This document shows, piece by piece, positions 6,703-23,000 of a stretch of DNA of 64,000 bases. Below the pieces are notes generated by a model that worked only from the letters and a program-made list of their open reading frames with translations, did not search any database and was not told the DNA's origin. Each line of letters starts with the position of its first letter. The stretch's first letter is position 1. A program made the translations under genes and the position numbers. The stretch comes from Vitrella brassicaformis CCMP3155 (lineage: Eukaryota > Protista > Chromerida), in the NCBI GenBank assembly GCA_001179505.1, contig CDMY01000738.1, forward strand, positions 62,001-126,000, in the 5' to 3' direction.

Positions 6703-6825
6703 CCTCGCAGGCAGGGGTCAGACCTGTGAGTGTACCCGGCCGCTCTGTCTGCGCTGGCTCGATTAGAGATCTGTCCGCCCCCAGGCCCCAAAACTCGACC
6801 CGTAAAGTCCCCTGCATCCTCCCCT

Positions 6826-7125
6826 NNNNNNNNNNNNNNNNNNNNNNNNNNNNNNNNNNNNNNNNNNNNNNNNNNNNNNNNNNNNNNNNNNNNNNNNNNN
6901 NNNNNNNNNNNNNNNNNNNNNNNNNNNNNNNNNNNNNNNNNNNNNNNNNNNNNNNNNNNNNNNNNNNNNNNNNNNNNNNNNNNNNNNNNNNNNNNNNNNN
7001 NNNNNNNNNNNNNNNNNNNNNNNNNNNNNNNNNNNNNNNNNNNNNNNNNNNNNNNNNNNNNNNNNNNNNNNNNNNNNNNNNNNNNNNNNNNNNNNNNNNN
7101 NNNNNNNNNNNNNNNNNNNNNNNNN
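6826..7125. other. Assembly gap (300 N)
   Basis: Run of N; all four gaps in the window are 300 N, suggesting a placeholder length. Confidence 0.99.
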
Positions 7126-7139
7126 CCCCAACAACAAAG

Positions 7140-8569
7140 ATGGCCTCTCCCGTCGCACCCGTCACCAAGTTGAGTCTGCGTGTTCGCAACAAGGCCCTGT
7201 CGAGGGCGCACGTTCGTGTGGTGGAGGCGAGGGAGCGGCAGGTGGTGGAACAGGAGCTCGAGAGGGCCACCGAGAAGGAACTGAAGATGACCCTGGGGGG
7301 TGGGATCAGTGCTGAGGTCGGTGGCCTAGAGATTGGCCTGGAGGCCAAAAGGGGCAAAGAAACACGTACGTGACAGCATGCACCAGAATGCACGGCGGAG
7401 GTCTCGGCGGTAGGCACTCTTTTCTGGGGATGTTCAGGTGACAAGACGGAAGAGAAGGCTGTCGTCCGCATTCAGTACGGCAAGCTCAGGGAGTCACGCG
7501 ACTGGTGAGAGGGGAGCTAGCTCTTTGTCCCGTGAGACCACGCTTGTCCCTTCCTATCAGGATAACGATTGATCCCGGCGAGGAGGCCATTTTGTCAAGC
7601 TTCGACTCCCCGTACATCTCAATCATCATCGAAGACTCGGACTATCAGCTGCTCAATCAGCTCATACACCCAGAAGAGCACAAATATGCCATCGCACTCA
7701 GAAGGGTGAGAGAAGCCAGTTGAGAGGCGCCCTTTAGTCACCTATGGCTGCTCTCCCTTTTCTAGGCCAACCCTCCATTTGTATCTCTCGTGATTGATGC
7801 CGTCGAGGTTGCAAATGTCGAAGCCAAGCAGAAGGCTTTCCGTCTGAACAACATCGTGACGAAGCTTGTGTTGACCGCAGTCGAAAGCATGGGCCGCGGC
7901 ATGTCGGTGGGGGTGGAGCCGAAGAAGAAGCGGGAGACACATGAGGAGGCCGATGTCTCGCGGCTGTGGATCCGACAAATGGACACTCTCTGCCCCAAGG
8001 GCGCTTTCCGTTTGGTCCCGGTGGCATTTCCCGACAAGACGCTGGCGGTCAGCCCATTGCTGGGCAACAGCCTCGTCCTTGATGTGCCAACGGTTGAGAC
8101 AGATGCCAAGGACAGTAAAGAGGAAGCACGATACGAGCAGTGGATCATGCTCTCAGCTGAGACGCAAGAGATTGCCCAGCCGAGGACAGACAGAGGCTGG
8201 TGCAGTTCGTTCTGCTGTCAGCCCTCCAAAGATCAGCTGCTCGTGTCGCCCGACATGGAGTTCCAGCCCGCGAAGGAGCAGAGGAGGGGAAGCAGCAAGT
8301 TCGATGACGAGACAGTGACCATCAAGTGTGTTGGGCTGCCGGACCATGTGATGAGTGTCAAAACGTTTGGGAGAAGCAAGAATCTGGTGATGACGAAGGG
8401 AGACGAAGGAGTCCCCGTGGAGGCCCTGTGGCGCTGCAGCCAGCCGATTGTGACCAAGAAGGGTAGCAAAAGCAATGCCACAAACCGTATAAACGACATT
8501 GTTATCTTTTTATGCTGCCTCCTTGCTTAAGCTGCGCTCAAAGGGGCTACCGCGACGGACACTGAAGAG
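7140..8569 (+). CDS. Unknown ~400-aa region (5 exons), probably the N-terminus of the downstream ankyrin gene
   Basis: Exons 7140-7365, 7438-7504, 7561-7705, 7766-8486, 8532-8569 join in frame (1197 nt, 399 codons) with GT-AG introns and splice in phase 0 onto 8634. The start may lie in the upstream gap. Confidence 0.6.
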
Positions 8570-8633
8570 GTCGGTGGCATCGCACTCGTTAAGCACGGCA
8601 GCTAGCGTTTCATTGACCCTCTGATTGACCCAG

Positions 8634-11600
8634 ATGAGCCTATTCGAGGCTTCTGCGGAGGGCAATTTGGAGGCTGTCTTGCGGATCATTCAGACCAAAG
8701 GCGTCAAATGCCTGCAGGAGACCGACGAGGTGAGACACACCGCTTGACATGGCAATGATGGGAACGTGACTGGTGTTTCGTGGCTTTGCAGGAGGGCTTC
8801 ACGGCGCTGCACTTCGCCGCCCAAAATGGTCATGAAGACATTGTCAGAGAGATAGTGACCAAAGGCGGCAAAGAACTCATCAAAAAGAGAACCATCGTAC
8901 AGGTGAGCTGAGACACAGCATGGCGAGCGACATCCAACAGCAACAGCCATCTTCATGTTCATTAGAATGAGCCTACAGCGTTGCATATGGCGATTGAGAA
9001 GGGTCATACACCAGTCGTCGCCGCGCTTGTCGAGCTCGGAGGGGCCGATGTCTTGTTTTTTCAGAGATGGGGTGCGAAAGAAGCAGTGCTCCCTACATTG
9101 TCTTCACCATTCTATTGTGCGGTATCCTATCGAACTTTATCTTGACTGTATTTCCTGCAGAATAAGGACACGCCTTTTTACACTGCTGCGCGATGTGGTG
9201 AAGTCGATGCGCTGACGGTGATGCATGCGAAAGGAGGTCGAAGCCTGCTGGAGCAGCAGTCGGATGTAAAGAGGACATACCTTTGGACATACATGATTGC
9301 TTCCCGTGTGCATCTGTGTGTGGGATGCAGGGCGAATATGCCATTCATTCCGCAGTCGCAAAGGGCCATCTCACTGTGGTCAATCAGCTCTTATCGTGGG
9401 GCGGAAAGGCGCAGCTCGACAACCTCAACAGCGTAAAGCCCTGTGCACTGCGCATTGTCTTGGACATGATCTTGTTATGCTTTGCTTGGCGACTGCAGAA
9501 CCGTCACACACCCTTCCTTCTTGCTGCGTGGGCTGGTCATGTGGATGTGTTGCGAGCGATTTTCGCCAAAGGGGGTGGCAAACCCTTACTGGAACAACAG
9601 AATCCAGTAAGGGGAGGAAGCCAATATCAACAAGTGTCAAGTGCGTGTCTATGATTATGACCACAGTTGGGCAGCTATGCGGTCCACTTGGCAGCTATAA
9701 TGGGCCATGTTGATGCGCTTCAGCAGGTGCTGGAGTAAGGAGGAAAAGCCGAGCTCAACAAACGCGATAAGGTTGGCCAGTGGAGCATACATCGCACACA
9801 TTGCCTTTGTGTGTGATTCAGGATGACTATTTCCCCATCCATCGAGCAGCTGAGAAAGGCCATCTTGATGTAGTCAAGAAATTGATTGAGTGGGGAGGAA
9901 AGGCTGAGGTCTACAGACGCGATAGCGTAAGCCAACTTAGAAAATGCGACAGGCCAACTTGGATGAAAATGTAGTGTGGAGACTTCCCCATCCGAGTTGC
10001 CGCCAGGAGTGGCGACCTAGCTACGTTCAACTACTTGATCGATCTTGGCGGGATTCAGCAGATAGACGAGTGCAGCTTTCATGTGAGCGATAAGACCTTC
10101 AGTTATCGCATCTTCCTCTTGCTTTCTTTCCTATCCCGCGTATCCTTTTCCTCTTGCTTTCCTTCAGCTTTTCAACGATGCTGCAATGGGGGGCAATGTT
10201 GACATTCTGAAAACGATTCGCACCAGAAGAGGCCCGGGGGTCGTGAAAGCAAAGGGAAGGGTAAGAGAAAGAGAGAAAGCGGCGCATATGTGCATTGTAG
10301 GGTCCTTGGTTTTGGATGTAATGCAGTTTCTCCTCTCTGCGCTCCATTACGCAGCTTCGGAAGGTCACGCTGCCGCAGTCGCCCAGCTGCTCGAATGGGG
10401 ATGCGCTGACGAAATCGATAAGCCTGATTGTGTATGCTTTCATTCAAAGCTTCAAGGCCGTTGCGACTTTCTTTGCTTTTTCCCTTCGTGGCAGCGATCC
10501 CTGACCCCATTTCATCTTGGAGCTTTCTGCGGGCGTCTGGATGTGCTCAAAGTGCTGTACTCTAAATTTGGAGAGCGCCTGCTTGAGCAAAGAGACGAGG
10601 TCCTGGAAGCTACCGTGACGGTTGATGTATGTACTGGTTTCTGTTGTGGATGTGTGGACAGGCTGGCCAATTCGCCATCCACCTCGCAGCTGGGGAATTC
10701 AATGACAACGCTGATGTGGTCACTCAGCTGATCGAGTGGGGCGGCATAAAGGAGCTCGAAAAGAAAAGACACGTAAGTGTTCTTTGTGTCGGTCGAGAAG
10801 CAGGTGCCTGCACTTGATGGCTATGGCTGCAGGACGGTTTGACACTCTTCGGTGTGGCTGCGCTCTGTGGTCGCGCCGATGCGTTGAGGGCGATGCATGC
10901 CAAGGGAGGCCAGGCACTCCTGTCTCAGAAGGAAGAAGATGTAAGATCACAGGACTGATTCCCATCGACAGCATGATGGTTCAGATGCGTGTGTACGTGT
11001 ATCTAATGTAGTCGGGCAACTTCCCCATCCATGCAGCTGCTGGCGGCAGTTCGGGCGATGCAGGTCGTGATACTCTAGGTCATGTCGCTGTGGTGAGGCA
11101 GCTGGTGGACTGGGGCGGCCTTGAGGAGCTCGACCGCTGCGATGAAGTAATGGCATTCTCCAAATGCAATGCATTCTTGACTTTGCCTGACTATGGCTGC
11201 GATTTATTCTGCAGTACGGAAACACACCGTTCCATCTCGCGGCGTTGTGTGGTTGCATTTTTGTGATGGAGGCGATGTACGCCAAGGCCGGGAAGGCGCT
11301 GCTGGACAAGCAGAGAAAAGTGAGAAAACGCAGCTTACAACAGGCTGACTCGCTTGTCCTGTGCCATGTTTTCCTCTTGCCTGTGTATTCATGTGTGATG
11401 CAGGGTGGCTATTTCCCCATTCACTGGGCAGCCGACAAGGGTCACGTGGCTGTGGTCAATCAGCTCGTCGAGTGGAAGGGCACAAAGGAGCTCGACAAAT
11501 GCGATGTTGTCAGTCAACCACCTGAGATGCACTGACAAGAGGTGGCTGCCTGACTGTGTCTGCTGTTTATTCTGCAGAACGACAACACACCCCTCCACTG

Positions 11601-13419
11601 TGCTGCGTCGGGCGGTCACGTCTCTGTGATTGAGGCGATGTACGCCAAGGGCGGGAAGACGCTGCTGGACAAGCAGAACAAAGTGAGGATAGACACAGCT
11701 CGCGACATCGTTTCCTGTGTCGTGAGCTTCTTCCTGCTTGTGTGTATTTGTGTGTGTGATGCAGGATGGCTATTTCGCCATTCACTGGGCAGCCGACAAA
11801 GGTCATGTCGGTGCCGTGGAGCGGCTGATCGAGTTTGGTGGGACAGAAGAGCTCGACAAGCGTGACAAAGTACGGCACCCTCCCCCTCCATACAATGCAT
11901 CGAGATGGATTTCCTGGAATGTTTGGGTGTCCATGGTGCAGGACGATGACACACCCCTCCACCGCGCTGCGCTGGGCGGTCACGTCTCTGTGATTGAGGC
12001 GATGTACGCCAAGGGCGGGAAGACGCTGCTGGACAAGCAGAACAAAGTGAGAAGAAACGCAGCTCGCGACAGAGTTTGCTGTGCCGTGAGCTTCTTCCTG
12101 CCTGTGTGTATTTGTGTGTGTGATGCAGAAGGGCAGGTTTCCATCCACTTCGCAGCCGACAAAGGTCATGTCGATGCCGTGGAGCGGCTGATCGAGTTTG
12201 GTGGGACAGAGGAGCTCGACAAGCGTGACAATGTAACGCACCCTCCTCCTTCAAACAATACATCGAGATGGATTTCCTACCATGTTTGGCTGTCCATGCT
12301 GCAGGACGATAACACACCTTTCCACCAGGCTGCAATATGTGGTCGCGTCTCTGTGATTGACGCAATGCATGCGCATCGCGGCCAGTCGCTACTTGACACA
12401 TATGGAAACTACAAGGTGAGAGGTACACACTTTGATAGACATGGCTGCATGTGTCCTCCTGCACATGTGCAATGCAGGCTTTCCCTATTCATCTGTGCGT
12501 GGCCGGTACGGCAACAGAAGGCGATACTCCAGGCCATGTTGCTGTATGTAAACGATTGATGGAGTTGGGTGGAAAAGTGGAGCTCGACAAGCGAGATGAG
12601 GTAATTCTTGTCGCTACTTGATGCATTCGCAAACCCTTTTCTTCACACAGGGCTTGGGCACTACTCCCTTTCACACTGCCGTATTCAATGGCTACGTTGA
12701 GCTAATGAAGACTATGTTTGCGGTGGGTGGCAAACCGCTACTGGACGCGAGGAGCAATGTAAGGAAGACAGAATGTCATATTTTCTCACCTGAGTGTTTG
12801 AATGTGAGTCAGAAGGGCTCATTACCGATTCATCAAACAGAAGGCGCCCATACTGTTTCCAGCCGCCATATCGCAGCCATGAAGCAGCTGATTGAGTGGG
12901 GAGGCGTCAAGCAGCTGAAAGAGAAAACCAGCGCTGTAAGCAGTGCCCCCATCAGTCCATTCGTATGCCTTGATTTGTTGTGTGCGTGTGCGTCACAGGG
13001 CAACACTCCCTTTCACACTGCCGCGTTCAATGGTTCCATTGAGCTAATGAACACTATGTATGCGGTGGGTGGCAAACCGCTACTGGACGCGAGGAACAAT
13101 GTAAGTGAAGAAGAAGACAGAATGTCATATTTTCGCACCTTCAGTGTTTGAATGTGAGTCAGGATGGCGAATTACCGATTCATCGAGCAGCAGGCTGCGA
13201 TACTGTTTCCAGCCGCCATATCGCAGCCATGAAGCAGCTGATCGAGTGGGGGGGCGTCAAGCAGCTGAAAGAGAAAACCAAGGCTGTAAGCTGCATTCCA
13301 TGCCGTCAGCCTTTTCTCTGCCCTCATTCGTTTTGTACATGTGCGTCATGCAGGGCAAGACCCCGCTGGACCTTGCGCAGAGCGACGAAATGCGCAGGCT
13401 CCTCAGCAGCTACAAATAG
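8634..13419 (+). CDS. Ankyrin repeat array, 28 exons, about one repeat per exon; in-frame TAA in exon 7
   Basis: Repeated T(P/A)LHxAAxxGHxxVVxxL motifs (EGFTALHFAAQNGHEDIVREIV, DDYFPIHRAAEKGHLDVVKKLIEWGG, NDNTPLHCAASGGHVSVIEAMYAKGG) ending in GKTPLDLAQSDEMRRLLSSYK*; each repeat is bounded by phase-0 GT-AG introns. Confidence 0.93.
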
Positions 13420-20089: not shown

Positions 20090-23000
20090 ATGTTTCCCAA
20101 CAGGGGCTATGCCGGTGAGCGCACGCAACCAATCCACAATTCCGGGCATCGAAAGCCCACCGTGTGTTGTCATTTTGTCCCCTCCAGCTCCCCCGAGCGG
20201 CTCTTCTCGCCCCGGTGCGGGTGTCCCATTCATTCCCCCCGCCCTGCCCACTCTCCGCCCTGTAGCTCCTCCGTCTGCCTCACCCCGAGGCTCGCCAGTG
20301 GGTGCCCGTCCCCCCTCCACCCCCCCACCCGTTGCCAGCGGGTCATTCAGCCCGCCCGTCATGCGACACCCAACCGCCACATACCTGCCGGGGCAGGGCC
20401 GGACCGGGGGTGTGTTCGTCACGCAGTCGTCGCTCATCACTCATGGGAGTGGGCCGGGGAGTGGGCCTGGGTCAACGCACTCGAGCATCATACTGACGCA
20501 GGTGGGCGTGGTGAGGGATGAATGGATGGGTGGCTGGACGCTGCATTTTGTGGATCTGTTTTGTTGGTGCTTCTTCAGTGGCCTCCGCCTTCTGGTGGTC
20601 GCGGGATGGAGACGCTCGTGTCGCCCAGGGTGGCTGGCAGGCCACAGCCGCCAAGCAGGTCAGACACACGGGCACACTGCCGCCCCATCAGTCATTCGAT
20701 CGCGTTCTGCCACTGTTTTCTCTGTCTTCAGTGTGGTGTATTCGGTTCGCGGTCCCCCAGTGTTTGGCCCGCCATCGCCATCCCAGCGCAGTGTGGTGTT
20801 GTATGCACCCAGCCCCAGGGGTCAGGCTCCGATTCACATGGCTGCCGTCGCTGCCGCCCCGGCACAGCCGCATGTCGCTGCTGGATCGCCCGCACAGCAG
20901 TGAGCACAGGCGGAAGCGTGCATGGATGCGTGTATGCATGACTGTCTCTGTCTGTCTACGTCAGATATGCGTCTGCCTTCTCGAGGGTGGAGGCCACTCG
21001 CCAGCGGCTGGATGAGCTCATCAAGAGCCAACACGGCCTTGATGCTGCCGCCAGCAAGGTGAATGAGTCGCGGACAGAGAGCACGGACCATTGTCGAGGT
21101 ATAAGAGAGTATATGTTTTGTGTCAGGATTTCGCGGCGCATGATGCGAACGAGGACAAGACGTTGCAGCGGAGTGAGGTCGAGGCGATGGTGAGGGACCT
21201 GGCTGTCAGGTACCAGATTCCCATGCCCGACAAAACCACACTCGAACGGTAGGCACGTCCAACAGACACACAAGAGGGGAAATCGGCAGGAGCTCGTGTG
21301 ATGTGTACGTGTGTGTGGATCGATGGCTGTAGTCTGTTCAACAAGTTCGACACCGCTGGGACGAACGAGATCCCGCAGGCGTCGTTCCGCGACTTCTACA
21401 GAGAGATCCTGTGCTTTATCAAACAGTCCTACTACCCACCAGTCGTCAGGTCACAACACGCCGACGACCACACATACACCCATTCATTCACTCCCATTCT
21501 CTCTGTCTCTTTCTGTGTGTGCAGGTTTCGTCGTGAGTTCTTCATTCAGGAGAAGCAAGCCAAGCTGGATGACTTCTACACGCGCGAAGACAAGCTCGGC
21601 CAGGGGCAGTTCGGCATTGTCTTCAAAGTCAGGGAGAAACGGACCGGCACGGGCGAAATGGGTGGGTGGGTGGTGAGACACGACACGCAGATCAGCAAGA
21701 ACAGAGGGAGACACGGGAGAGGTGTTCGGTCATGTGGGCGTGTGCAGGTCTGTTTCGTTGCTGCAAAACGATATCTAAGAGCAAGACAACGTGTCCGAGG
21801 GAGCTCATTGCCAACGAGATCGACGTGCTGAGACGGCTCGACCACCCTAACATTGTCAGTCAGTCAGTTATCACACTCAACGCAGAGAGACATCAAGCCA
21901 TCTGTGAACATGTGTGTGTAGGTGCGTATGTACGAGGCGTTCGAGGACTACCAGAATCTGTACCTCATTTTCGAGCTCATCGACGGCAAAGAGCTGCTCG
22001 ACATCATTCTTGATCTCGCAAGGGCAGGTCCGTGTGTGTGTGGTGGCTGGCAAAAAATGGTGAGACGAATGGCCTGCGTCTCTCTCTCTCTCTGTCTCTC
22101 TGTCTCTCTCTTTCTCTCTCTCTTTGTCTGTGCAGGTCAGGCGTTTGACGAGGCGCGTGCAGCGCGGGTGCTGCGGAGTGTATTGTCGGCCATCGCGCAC
22201 TGTCACTCCAACAGGGTGATGCACAAGGACCTCAAGCCGGAAAACATCATGATCCTCAACAAAGACCTTGACGTGCTCGATGCCGGTCGGTCAGCCAGCC
22301 ACCCAGCCACGCGAGATGTCTCAGAAAGACGAAGCATTTGTTGTATGATTGCAGGCAGCGTGAAGATGATCGATTTCGGTCTGGCTGAGATGTTCACGCC
22401 AGGTCACGTGTCGACCACTGCTGCTGGCACGCCCTACTACATGAGCCCCGAGGTCACACAAACACACACTTTGCTGGTGGAGTGAACGTCTCTGTGTGTG
22501 GAGCTGCAGGTGTTCCATCACAACTTCAACTACAAGTGCGACGTGTGGTCGGTGGGCGTGCTGCTCTACCTCATGCTCACCGCGCACCTGCCATTCGACG
22601 CGCCCAACAAAGAAGAATACATCAAGGTAAGGCCGCCCACCACACAGACAGAGAAGACCTCCTGCACACCATCATCTCTATCTCATGTGTGTCAGGTGGT
22701 GACCAACCAGCCGGTGTCGTTCCCGGACCACCTCTTCAAGAACATTTCAAAAGAGGCTGTGGAACTCCTGAAGCGTCTGCTGGAGAAAAAAGTCGAGCTG
22801 CGCCCCACGGCCGCACAGGCGCTGGACCACCCATGGTTCCAGAAGTTCCCTGACAAAGCACGTGGGTCTAACAGGAGGCTGGGCGAGCTCACCAGGCAAG
22901 GCACCGTCTTCCAAGTCTATGCTCAGGTGGGAGAGGGTGGGTGTTTCTGCCTACACACATTCACGTCGCGTACATTTCTCTCTCCTTGTTTTTCTGTGTC

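Follow-up and report, generated by a model that had tools for sequence, protein, structure and literature searches.

The stretch of DNA analyzed here, hereafter the window, comprises 64,000 nucleotides from the genome of the coral-associated alga Vitrella brassicaformis CCMP3155 (contig C738, positions 62001-126000; the assembly counts 72.7 Mb in 1064 contigs). Vitrella belongs to the chromerids, free-living relatives of the apicomplexan parasites. Between positions 7140 and 13419 of the window, on the plus strand, lies a single intron-rich gene in which a head of about 390 amino acids is spliced in frame to an array of ankyrin repeats. A preliminary description of the nucleotide sequence had proposed this join and had taken the head for an unknown, possibly membrane-attacking effector and the repeats for its sensor. 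The fusion is already contained in the public annotation, as an uncharacterised protein: P0015, an NCBI entry for this strain with 588 residues and the name 'unnamed protein product', is letter-for-letter identical to the head exons, a linker mini-exon and the first ankyrin exon of the window.

The head is spread over four exons whose borders all follow the GT-AG rule, with compatible phases in the window sequence. Exon 1 (7140-7365, starting with the ATG, MASPVAPVTKLSLRVRNK..) ends at a phase-1 donor GTACGT, is identical to residues 1-75 of P0015 and codes for two strands, a charged helix and a Gly-rich hairpin. An assembly gap of 300 N (6826-7125) ends 14 nt upstream of the ATG; nevertheless, 7140 probably is the true start, because six paralogues share the MASP.. 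N-terminus of the window copy. Exon 2 (7438-7504, 67 nt, donor GTGAGA, phase 2) and exon 3 (7561-7705, 145 nt, phase 0, with ..WITIDPGEEAILSSFDSPYISIIIEDS..) match P0015 as well. Exon 4 spans 697 nt (7766-8462) and most likely ends at the phase-1 donor G/GTAGCA at 8463, with the slash marking the exon border. The preliminary description had instead let it run to 8486, followed by a 45-nt intron (8487-8531) with the donor GTATAA. However, the 8463 donor is the one used by P0015, and its context AAG G/GTA is kept at this position across the paralogues. The intron would then measure 69 nt, and the head would count 391 instead of 399 residues. As both donors are in phase 1, the frame argument for the join holds with either of them.

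Downstream, two elements of the preliminary description recur unchanged in P0015, a linker mini-exon of 38 nt (8532-8569, ..ALKGATATDTEE) and an intron of 64 nt with a GTCGGT donor (8570-8633). They are followed by the first ankyrin exon (8634-8729), also present in P0015, which caps the array and begins with an ATG in the window copy. At the junction P0015 reads ..CSQPIVTKK, then AALKGATATDTEE, then MSLFEASAEG.., and a linker of 13 residues connects the repeats with the beta-trefoil domain described below. Homologues of the mini-exon are found in the paralogues on contigs C243, C466, C379, C965 and C743. The unusual donor GTCGG[TC] behind it (window 8570-8575; also loci L011, L012 and L016) is conserved in four paralogues, and the hexamer GTCGGT is also present at 22286-22291 of the window, in a gene that the preliminary description called CDPK.

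In the Vitrella genome, exon 4 has matches at no fewer than 17 places, spread over 14 contigs besides that of the window. In close paralogues, tblastn recovered the same order of exons 1 to 4 and cap exon (A1), and at 15 of 15 loci ankyrin-coding high-scoring segment pairs lay directly downstream on the same strand, with none upstream or on the opposite strand. The locus could alternatively be read as two adjacent genes, a head-only gene that ends with the TAA at 8528-8530 and a separate ankyrin gene that starts with the ATG at 8634. The exon 4 frame indeed runs on to the stop at 8530, the next coding exon opens with an ATG, and a paralogous open reading frame (ORF), P0004 (369 amino acids, flagged 'complete'), contains the head alone. 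Yet the two genes would lie only about 100 nt apart, and only four of ten copies open the cap exon with an ATG, the other six having GTG, GTC, AAG or CTC in its place. Moreover, every paralogue has frame-preserving GT-AG introns, although their lengths differ. On contig C302, the frame is restored only via a GT-AG intron of 49 nt, and on C982 an intron of 54 nt is itself in frame, so that trefoil and ankyrin cap share a single open frame. The junction is also spanned by two MMETSP transcriptome ORFs, namely P0007, which matches C302 and reads ..CSRPTKK/MSLFEACAEG.., and P0011, which matches C965 and extends in full length from the start codon into the repeats. Given the paralogue order, the non-ATG cap codons, the frame-keeping introns and the junction-crossing ORFs, to which the fused P0015 adds, two separate genes are very unlikely, to a degree that we give them almost no weight, and the join proposed from the window sequence stands.

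Several paralogues feature short, stop-free introns with lengths that are multiples of 3 (3708-3761 in L013 on C982; the head ORFs of L025 on C249 and of L026 on C297). In these, one frame runs through head and cap or through every exon of the head, and isoforms retaining such introns would stay in frame. P0004 (L019, G000:C297:3489-4694, minus strand) is an MMETSP ORF that ends just after the trefoil and may stem from an isoform restricted to the head or from a transcript that retains an intron. The genome model for this locus, P0012 (454 amino acids), continues, and ankyrin exons are located about 0.9 kb downstream.

For the ankyrin part, dynamic programming over phase-0 GT-AG exons, scored by splice sites and similarity, produced a chain of 28 phase-0 exons that starts at 8634 and closes with the TAG at 13417-13419 (2964 nt, 987 amino acids, one repeat per exon). 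The 27 exons behind the cap (8792-13419) end with the C-terminus ..DLAQSDEMRRLLSSYK and the stop, which is conserved in the family and also found in P0007. Single window exons reached 22-31 bits against the Pfam model Ank PF00023 (cut-off 21.1), P0015 and its paralogues match Pfam Ank_2 and Ank, and in the predicted model of P0002, the paralogue on C466, the C-terminal part superposes on DARPins with a root-mean-square deviation (rmsd) of 1.3-2 Å. The 28-exon array of the preliminary description could hence be recovered as a chain up to 13419, but an in-frame TAA at 9736-9738 breaks the family-typical seventh exon (9667-9771, 105 nt) where a W, L or F codon is usual. The chain remains open only if a weak donor, GTGCTG at 9727, is used or if the seventh exon is skipped; skipping keeps the frame because all ankyrin exons are symmetric. 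Another ankyrin exon (8966-9085, NEPTALHMAIEKGH..) lacks a canonical phase-0 donor where one would be expected.

Unless the seventh exon is skipped or shortened, the window copy may make only the 588-residue product. It is conceivable, although we rather doubt it, that this copy is damaged and yields nothing but this product, i.e., the head and about six repeats, whereas the 21 later exons are left untranslated as a remnant or serve as a unit of their own, in which case the array of 28 exons would not be a single protein. This would be in agreement with P0015, which terminates at the TAA in the otherwise regular 105-nt exon and leaves out the exon at 8966-9085, and with the finding that no transcript ORF clusters with it. 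In contrast, the 21 exons downstream of the TAA are intact, and their open phase-0 frames, GT-AG borders and conserved C-terminus would be unexpected after long disuse; both the donor at 9727 and skipping of the seventh exon preserve the frame. Since these exons are intact, the TAA might be recent, bypassed or a sequence error, and a single step leads from TTA to TAA.

The larger part of the head is, according to structure prediction, a ricin-B-like beta-trefoil and thus a type of binding module rather than a new fold. It covers approximately residues 165-385 (7838-8452), about 60% of the head. The AlphaFold2 model of P0002, whose head is 65-70% identical to that of the window, has predicted local distance difference test (pLDDT) values of at least 90 for most of residues 160-375, whereas residues 52-94, 124-151 and 288-318 stay under 50. 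With this model, Foldseek retrieved the N-terminal regions of IP3R and RyR, the mosquitocidal toxin MTX and ThreeFoil (template modeling (TM) score 0.74 by target), consistent with a trefoil fold of threefold pseudo-symmetry. As to the (QxW)3 signature of R-type lectins, the paralogue alignment keeps a W in every third (SQLW, EQW and xLW; QLW, EQW and ALW in the window); neither PF00652 nor PF14200 of Pfam matched at E ≤1. Inside the predicted trefoil, a Cys cluster (CSSFCC, 8201-8218) opens a long loop with pLDDT below 50, and its CC pair is conserved across the subfamilies. The preliminary description had called the head unknown; this holds in so far as no sequence-database family covers it, but not for the trefoil part of the fold.

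Like R-type lectins (ricin-B-like, CBM13), for example the MTX holotoxin (2vsa), botulinum HA33 (3win) and ThreeFoil (3pg0), the Vitrella head is predicted to adopt the trefoil fold. Unlike these, it does not match Pfam Ricin_B_lectin at E ≤1, shares only 7-23% identity with its structural matches and carries an inserted Cys-rich loop of 30-40 residues; furthermore, the Vitrella protein is predicted to be cytosolic and is fused to ankyrin repeats. The N-terminal region of IP3 and ryanodine receptors combines the same domain types, beta-trefoils followed by an alpha-solenoid. However, with a global rmsd of 14-19 Å the domain types agree while their arrangement does not, the Vitrella repeats are ankyrin and not armadillo repeats, and there is neither sequence similarity nor a channel part. 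One paralogue, P0001/P0013 (L015, G000:C541:1-10000, minus strand 6775-8376), possesses two trefoil-type modules in tandem, with an acidic low-complexity linker between them. Only 26% identity to the window's module is seen in the second one, and ankyrin exons begin about 2.4 kb beyond.

Upstream of the trefoil, residues 1-146 probably fold into a small beta-sandwich that accommodates a charged helix as an insertion and features a Gly-rich amphipathic hairpin, as judged from predicted models. Two AlphaFold2 runs, on P0002 and on the head-only P0004, agree on the secondary structure, with two strands, a helix of 16-23 residues, a disordered Gly-rich stretch and four or five further strands. The sandwich matches, to CarboxypepD_reg, VHL beta and HYDIN-type Ig domains, are weak. 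The comparison by AlphaFold and Foldseek that the preliminary description had suggested hence identified the trefoil, but gave low confidence for these residues. The alternating Gly-rich stretch noted there is present (TLGGGISAEVGGLEIGLEAK, residues 51-70, 7290-7349) and kept in the two subfamilies, approximately as G-G-[IVM]-x-[AVG]-[EG]-[FVL]-G-[GD]-[VLI]-E-[IVL]-G-[VLF]. In both AlphaFold2 models its pLDDT is about 30. We also considered an amyloid signaling motif for this stretch and dropped it, as the stretch is acidic and does not have the N/Q pattern generally known for such motifs.

The head family has at least 15 copies and, by profile search, is restricted to Vitrella and always tied to ankyrin arrays. 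A HMMER profile built from 17 paralogue sequences and run against 1.84e9 cluster representatives matched eight proteins, seven of them from Vitrella, and hence brought up no relative of the head from any other organism. The remaining match, P0008 (a bacterial Big_9 protein of 3348 amino acids; E 1.7e-5), was scattered over 14 short stretches and was taken as spurious. Heads occurred together with ankyrin and never with another repeat type (15/15 loci), and the ankyrin cap exon was found only beside heads of this family (10/10). This argues for a fixed unit that was multiplied as a whole and not for a modular swapping of effectors and sensors; the pairing of the head with different repeat arrays, for which the preliminary description had advised a genome-wide search, was thus not encountered. 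In exon 4, dN/dS ratios of 0.09-0.31 among five paralogues point to purifying selection.

Searches with head sequences remained without a family assignment. At E ≤1, no Pfam model matched the head exons or the intron-free paralogue ORFs, HET/HeLo models included, and none of the aerolysin, ETX-MTX2, MACPF or Toxin_10 models matched any head piece or paralogue. A word-based protein search with exon 4 gave no hit either, as every relative exceeds its length window. The full proteins P0015, P0002 and P0003 gave only Ank in Pfam, with no enzyme family and no NB-ARC or NACHT P-loop NTPase, in agreement with the preliminary description, which had seen no NTPase and excluded a canonical NLR. PADLOC matched the ankyrin part and nothing in the head. 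Sequence-profile comparison with the PDB produced one match to the head, thaumatin (E 0.52), which we judged to be due to chance. Neither a signal peptide nor a transmembrane helix was found; the N-terminus is not hydrophobic, and hydropathy over 19 residues reaches at most 1.3. In the published literature, we found nothing on a trefoil-ankyrin family.

Within the ankyrin array, window positions 11404-12415 and 12651-13285 contain tandem duplicates of two-exon (A+B) cassettes. Their introns reach up to 89-93% identity (73/82 and 50/54 aligned bases), and the differences between their exons are mainly amino-acid replacements close to the N-terminal face of the repeat. In three recent duplicates of such cassettes, the ratios of nonsynonymous to synonymous-only codon differences are 4:1, 8:2 and 7:1, 19 versus 4 in total. 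Of the 19 replacements, 15 fall into the first 14 repeat positions, that is, the hairpin and the face of the first helix (binomial p ~4e-4). Hence, there is a hint in the sequence that the binding face of the array diversifies, which would fit the 'sensor' role of the preliminary description.

What might such a protein do? We consider it moderately likely that the gene encodes a cytosolic recognition or adaptor protein with two binding surfaces, in which a head of about 391 residues found only in Vitrella is mounted via a short linker exon on an exon-per-repeat ankyrin solenoid. The trefoil, perhaps together with the beta domain and possibly tethered to lipid via its conserved CC loop, would bind a small ligand, a glycan or a membrane component, the ankyrin array would bind variable protein partners, and pores would not be formed. 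Several points speak against this proposal. Transcript support for the fusion comes from paralogues and not from the window copy, since P0015 is the sole member of its cluster. As the Pfam ricin-type lectin models do not match the head, sugar binding is not implied by the fold. Residues 1-146 have pLDDT values of only about 30-65 in both AlphaFold2 runs, and in ESM Atlas models of P0015 and P0003 their likeness to beta-sandwiches does not exceed TM scores of 0.40-0.47. That the CC loop is palmitoylated is pure conjecture. Finally, targeting domains of toxins, whether pore-forming or not (Cry35/Tpp, BinAB, LSL, VCC and MTX), account for many of the top trefoil matches, so that a toxin-like role would be compatible with the fold.

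The VIA matches, however, also include the lectins CNL, CCL2, MOA, SSA and RSA, in which, as in Vitrella, a ricin-B-like trefoil occurs without a signal peptide. The protein might act as a cytoplasmic defense chimerolectin as in fungal fruiting bodies: once the cell has been eaten or invaded, its trefoil would attach to glycans of the grazer or pathogen, with the ankyrin repeats adding avidity or specificity. The lineage-specific expansion to at least 15 copies would suit such a role, yet the failure of the lectin models in Pfam does not, and ankyrin arrays are not known from the chimerolectins of fungi; we regard this explanation as unlikely. We judge it improbable that the head represents a death or effector domain of an undescribed, beta-pore-forming kind, released by the ankyrin part as the sensor in the manner of NLR-like or HET-type proteins without an NTPase. 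Such a role could draw on the Gly-rich amphipathic hairpin conserved in all subfamilies, on the seemingly diversifying ankyrin face, on the low model confidence for residues 1-146 and on the fact that beta-trefoils are often found alongside modules that form pores (Cry35/Tpp, BinAB, LSL and VCC are among the top VIA matches). But the hairpin, disordered in both AlphaFold2 models, has only about 7 residues per strand, which is short for spanning a bilayer, judging by beta-barrel pores. The domain of about 146 residues includes a helix of 23 residues and is too small for the known aerolysin, MACPF or gasdermin modules, toxin or death domains were not matched in Pfam or PADLOC, selection on the head is of the ordinary purifying kind, and the architecture is fixed, without any recombination that brings in other repeats or heads. 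Judged by sequence and size, the head thus lacks the elongated module of at least 200 residues and the hairpin of about 10 residues per strand that mark beta-pore-forming toxins. In toxins that do combine a lectin with a pore former (Toxin_10/Tpp, i.e., Cry35 and BinAB, Laetiporus LSL and Vibrio cytolysins), the pore is made by a separate aerolysin- or leukocidin-type module of at least 200 residues, usually C-terminal to the trefoil, whereas the sole other domain of the Vitrella head is N-terminal, counts about 146 residues and has no family match. The membrane-attacking effector of the preliminary description is hence unsupported rather than refuted. In its most specific form, a new membrane-active or death-inducing module of 146 residues, which includes the conserved helix and the Gly-rich hairpin, would be restrained by the trefoil-ankyrin body until a target engages the diversifying surface of the ankyrin array; this is distinctly improbable, but if true, it would mean an immune-type receptor repertoire without NTPases that is private to a chromerid alga.

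Compared with the public annotation and the preliminary description, the analysis adds a predicted fold for about 60% of a region without Pfam match, the extent of the family, the probable correction of the exon 4 donor to 8463 and the stop in the seventh ankyrin exon. With its 15 copies, this species-restricted family appears to combine a lectin-like trefoil and a beta domain with a diversifying ankyrin array. If its members are recognition molecules, as we propose with the adaptor reading, their head would be non-enzymatic, and arrays of glycans or lipids could serve to identify its ligand.

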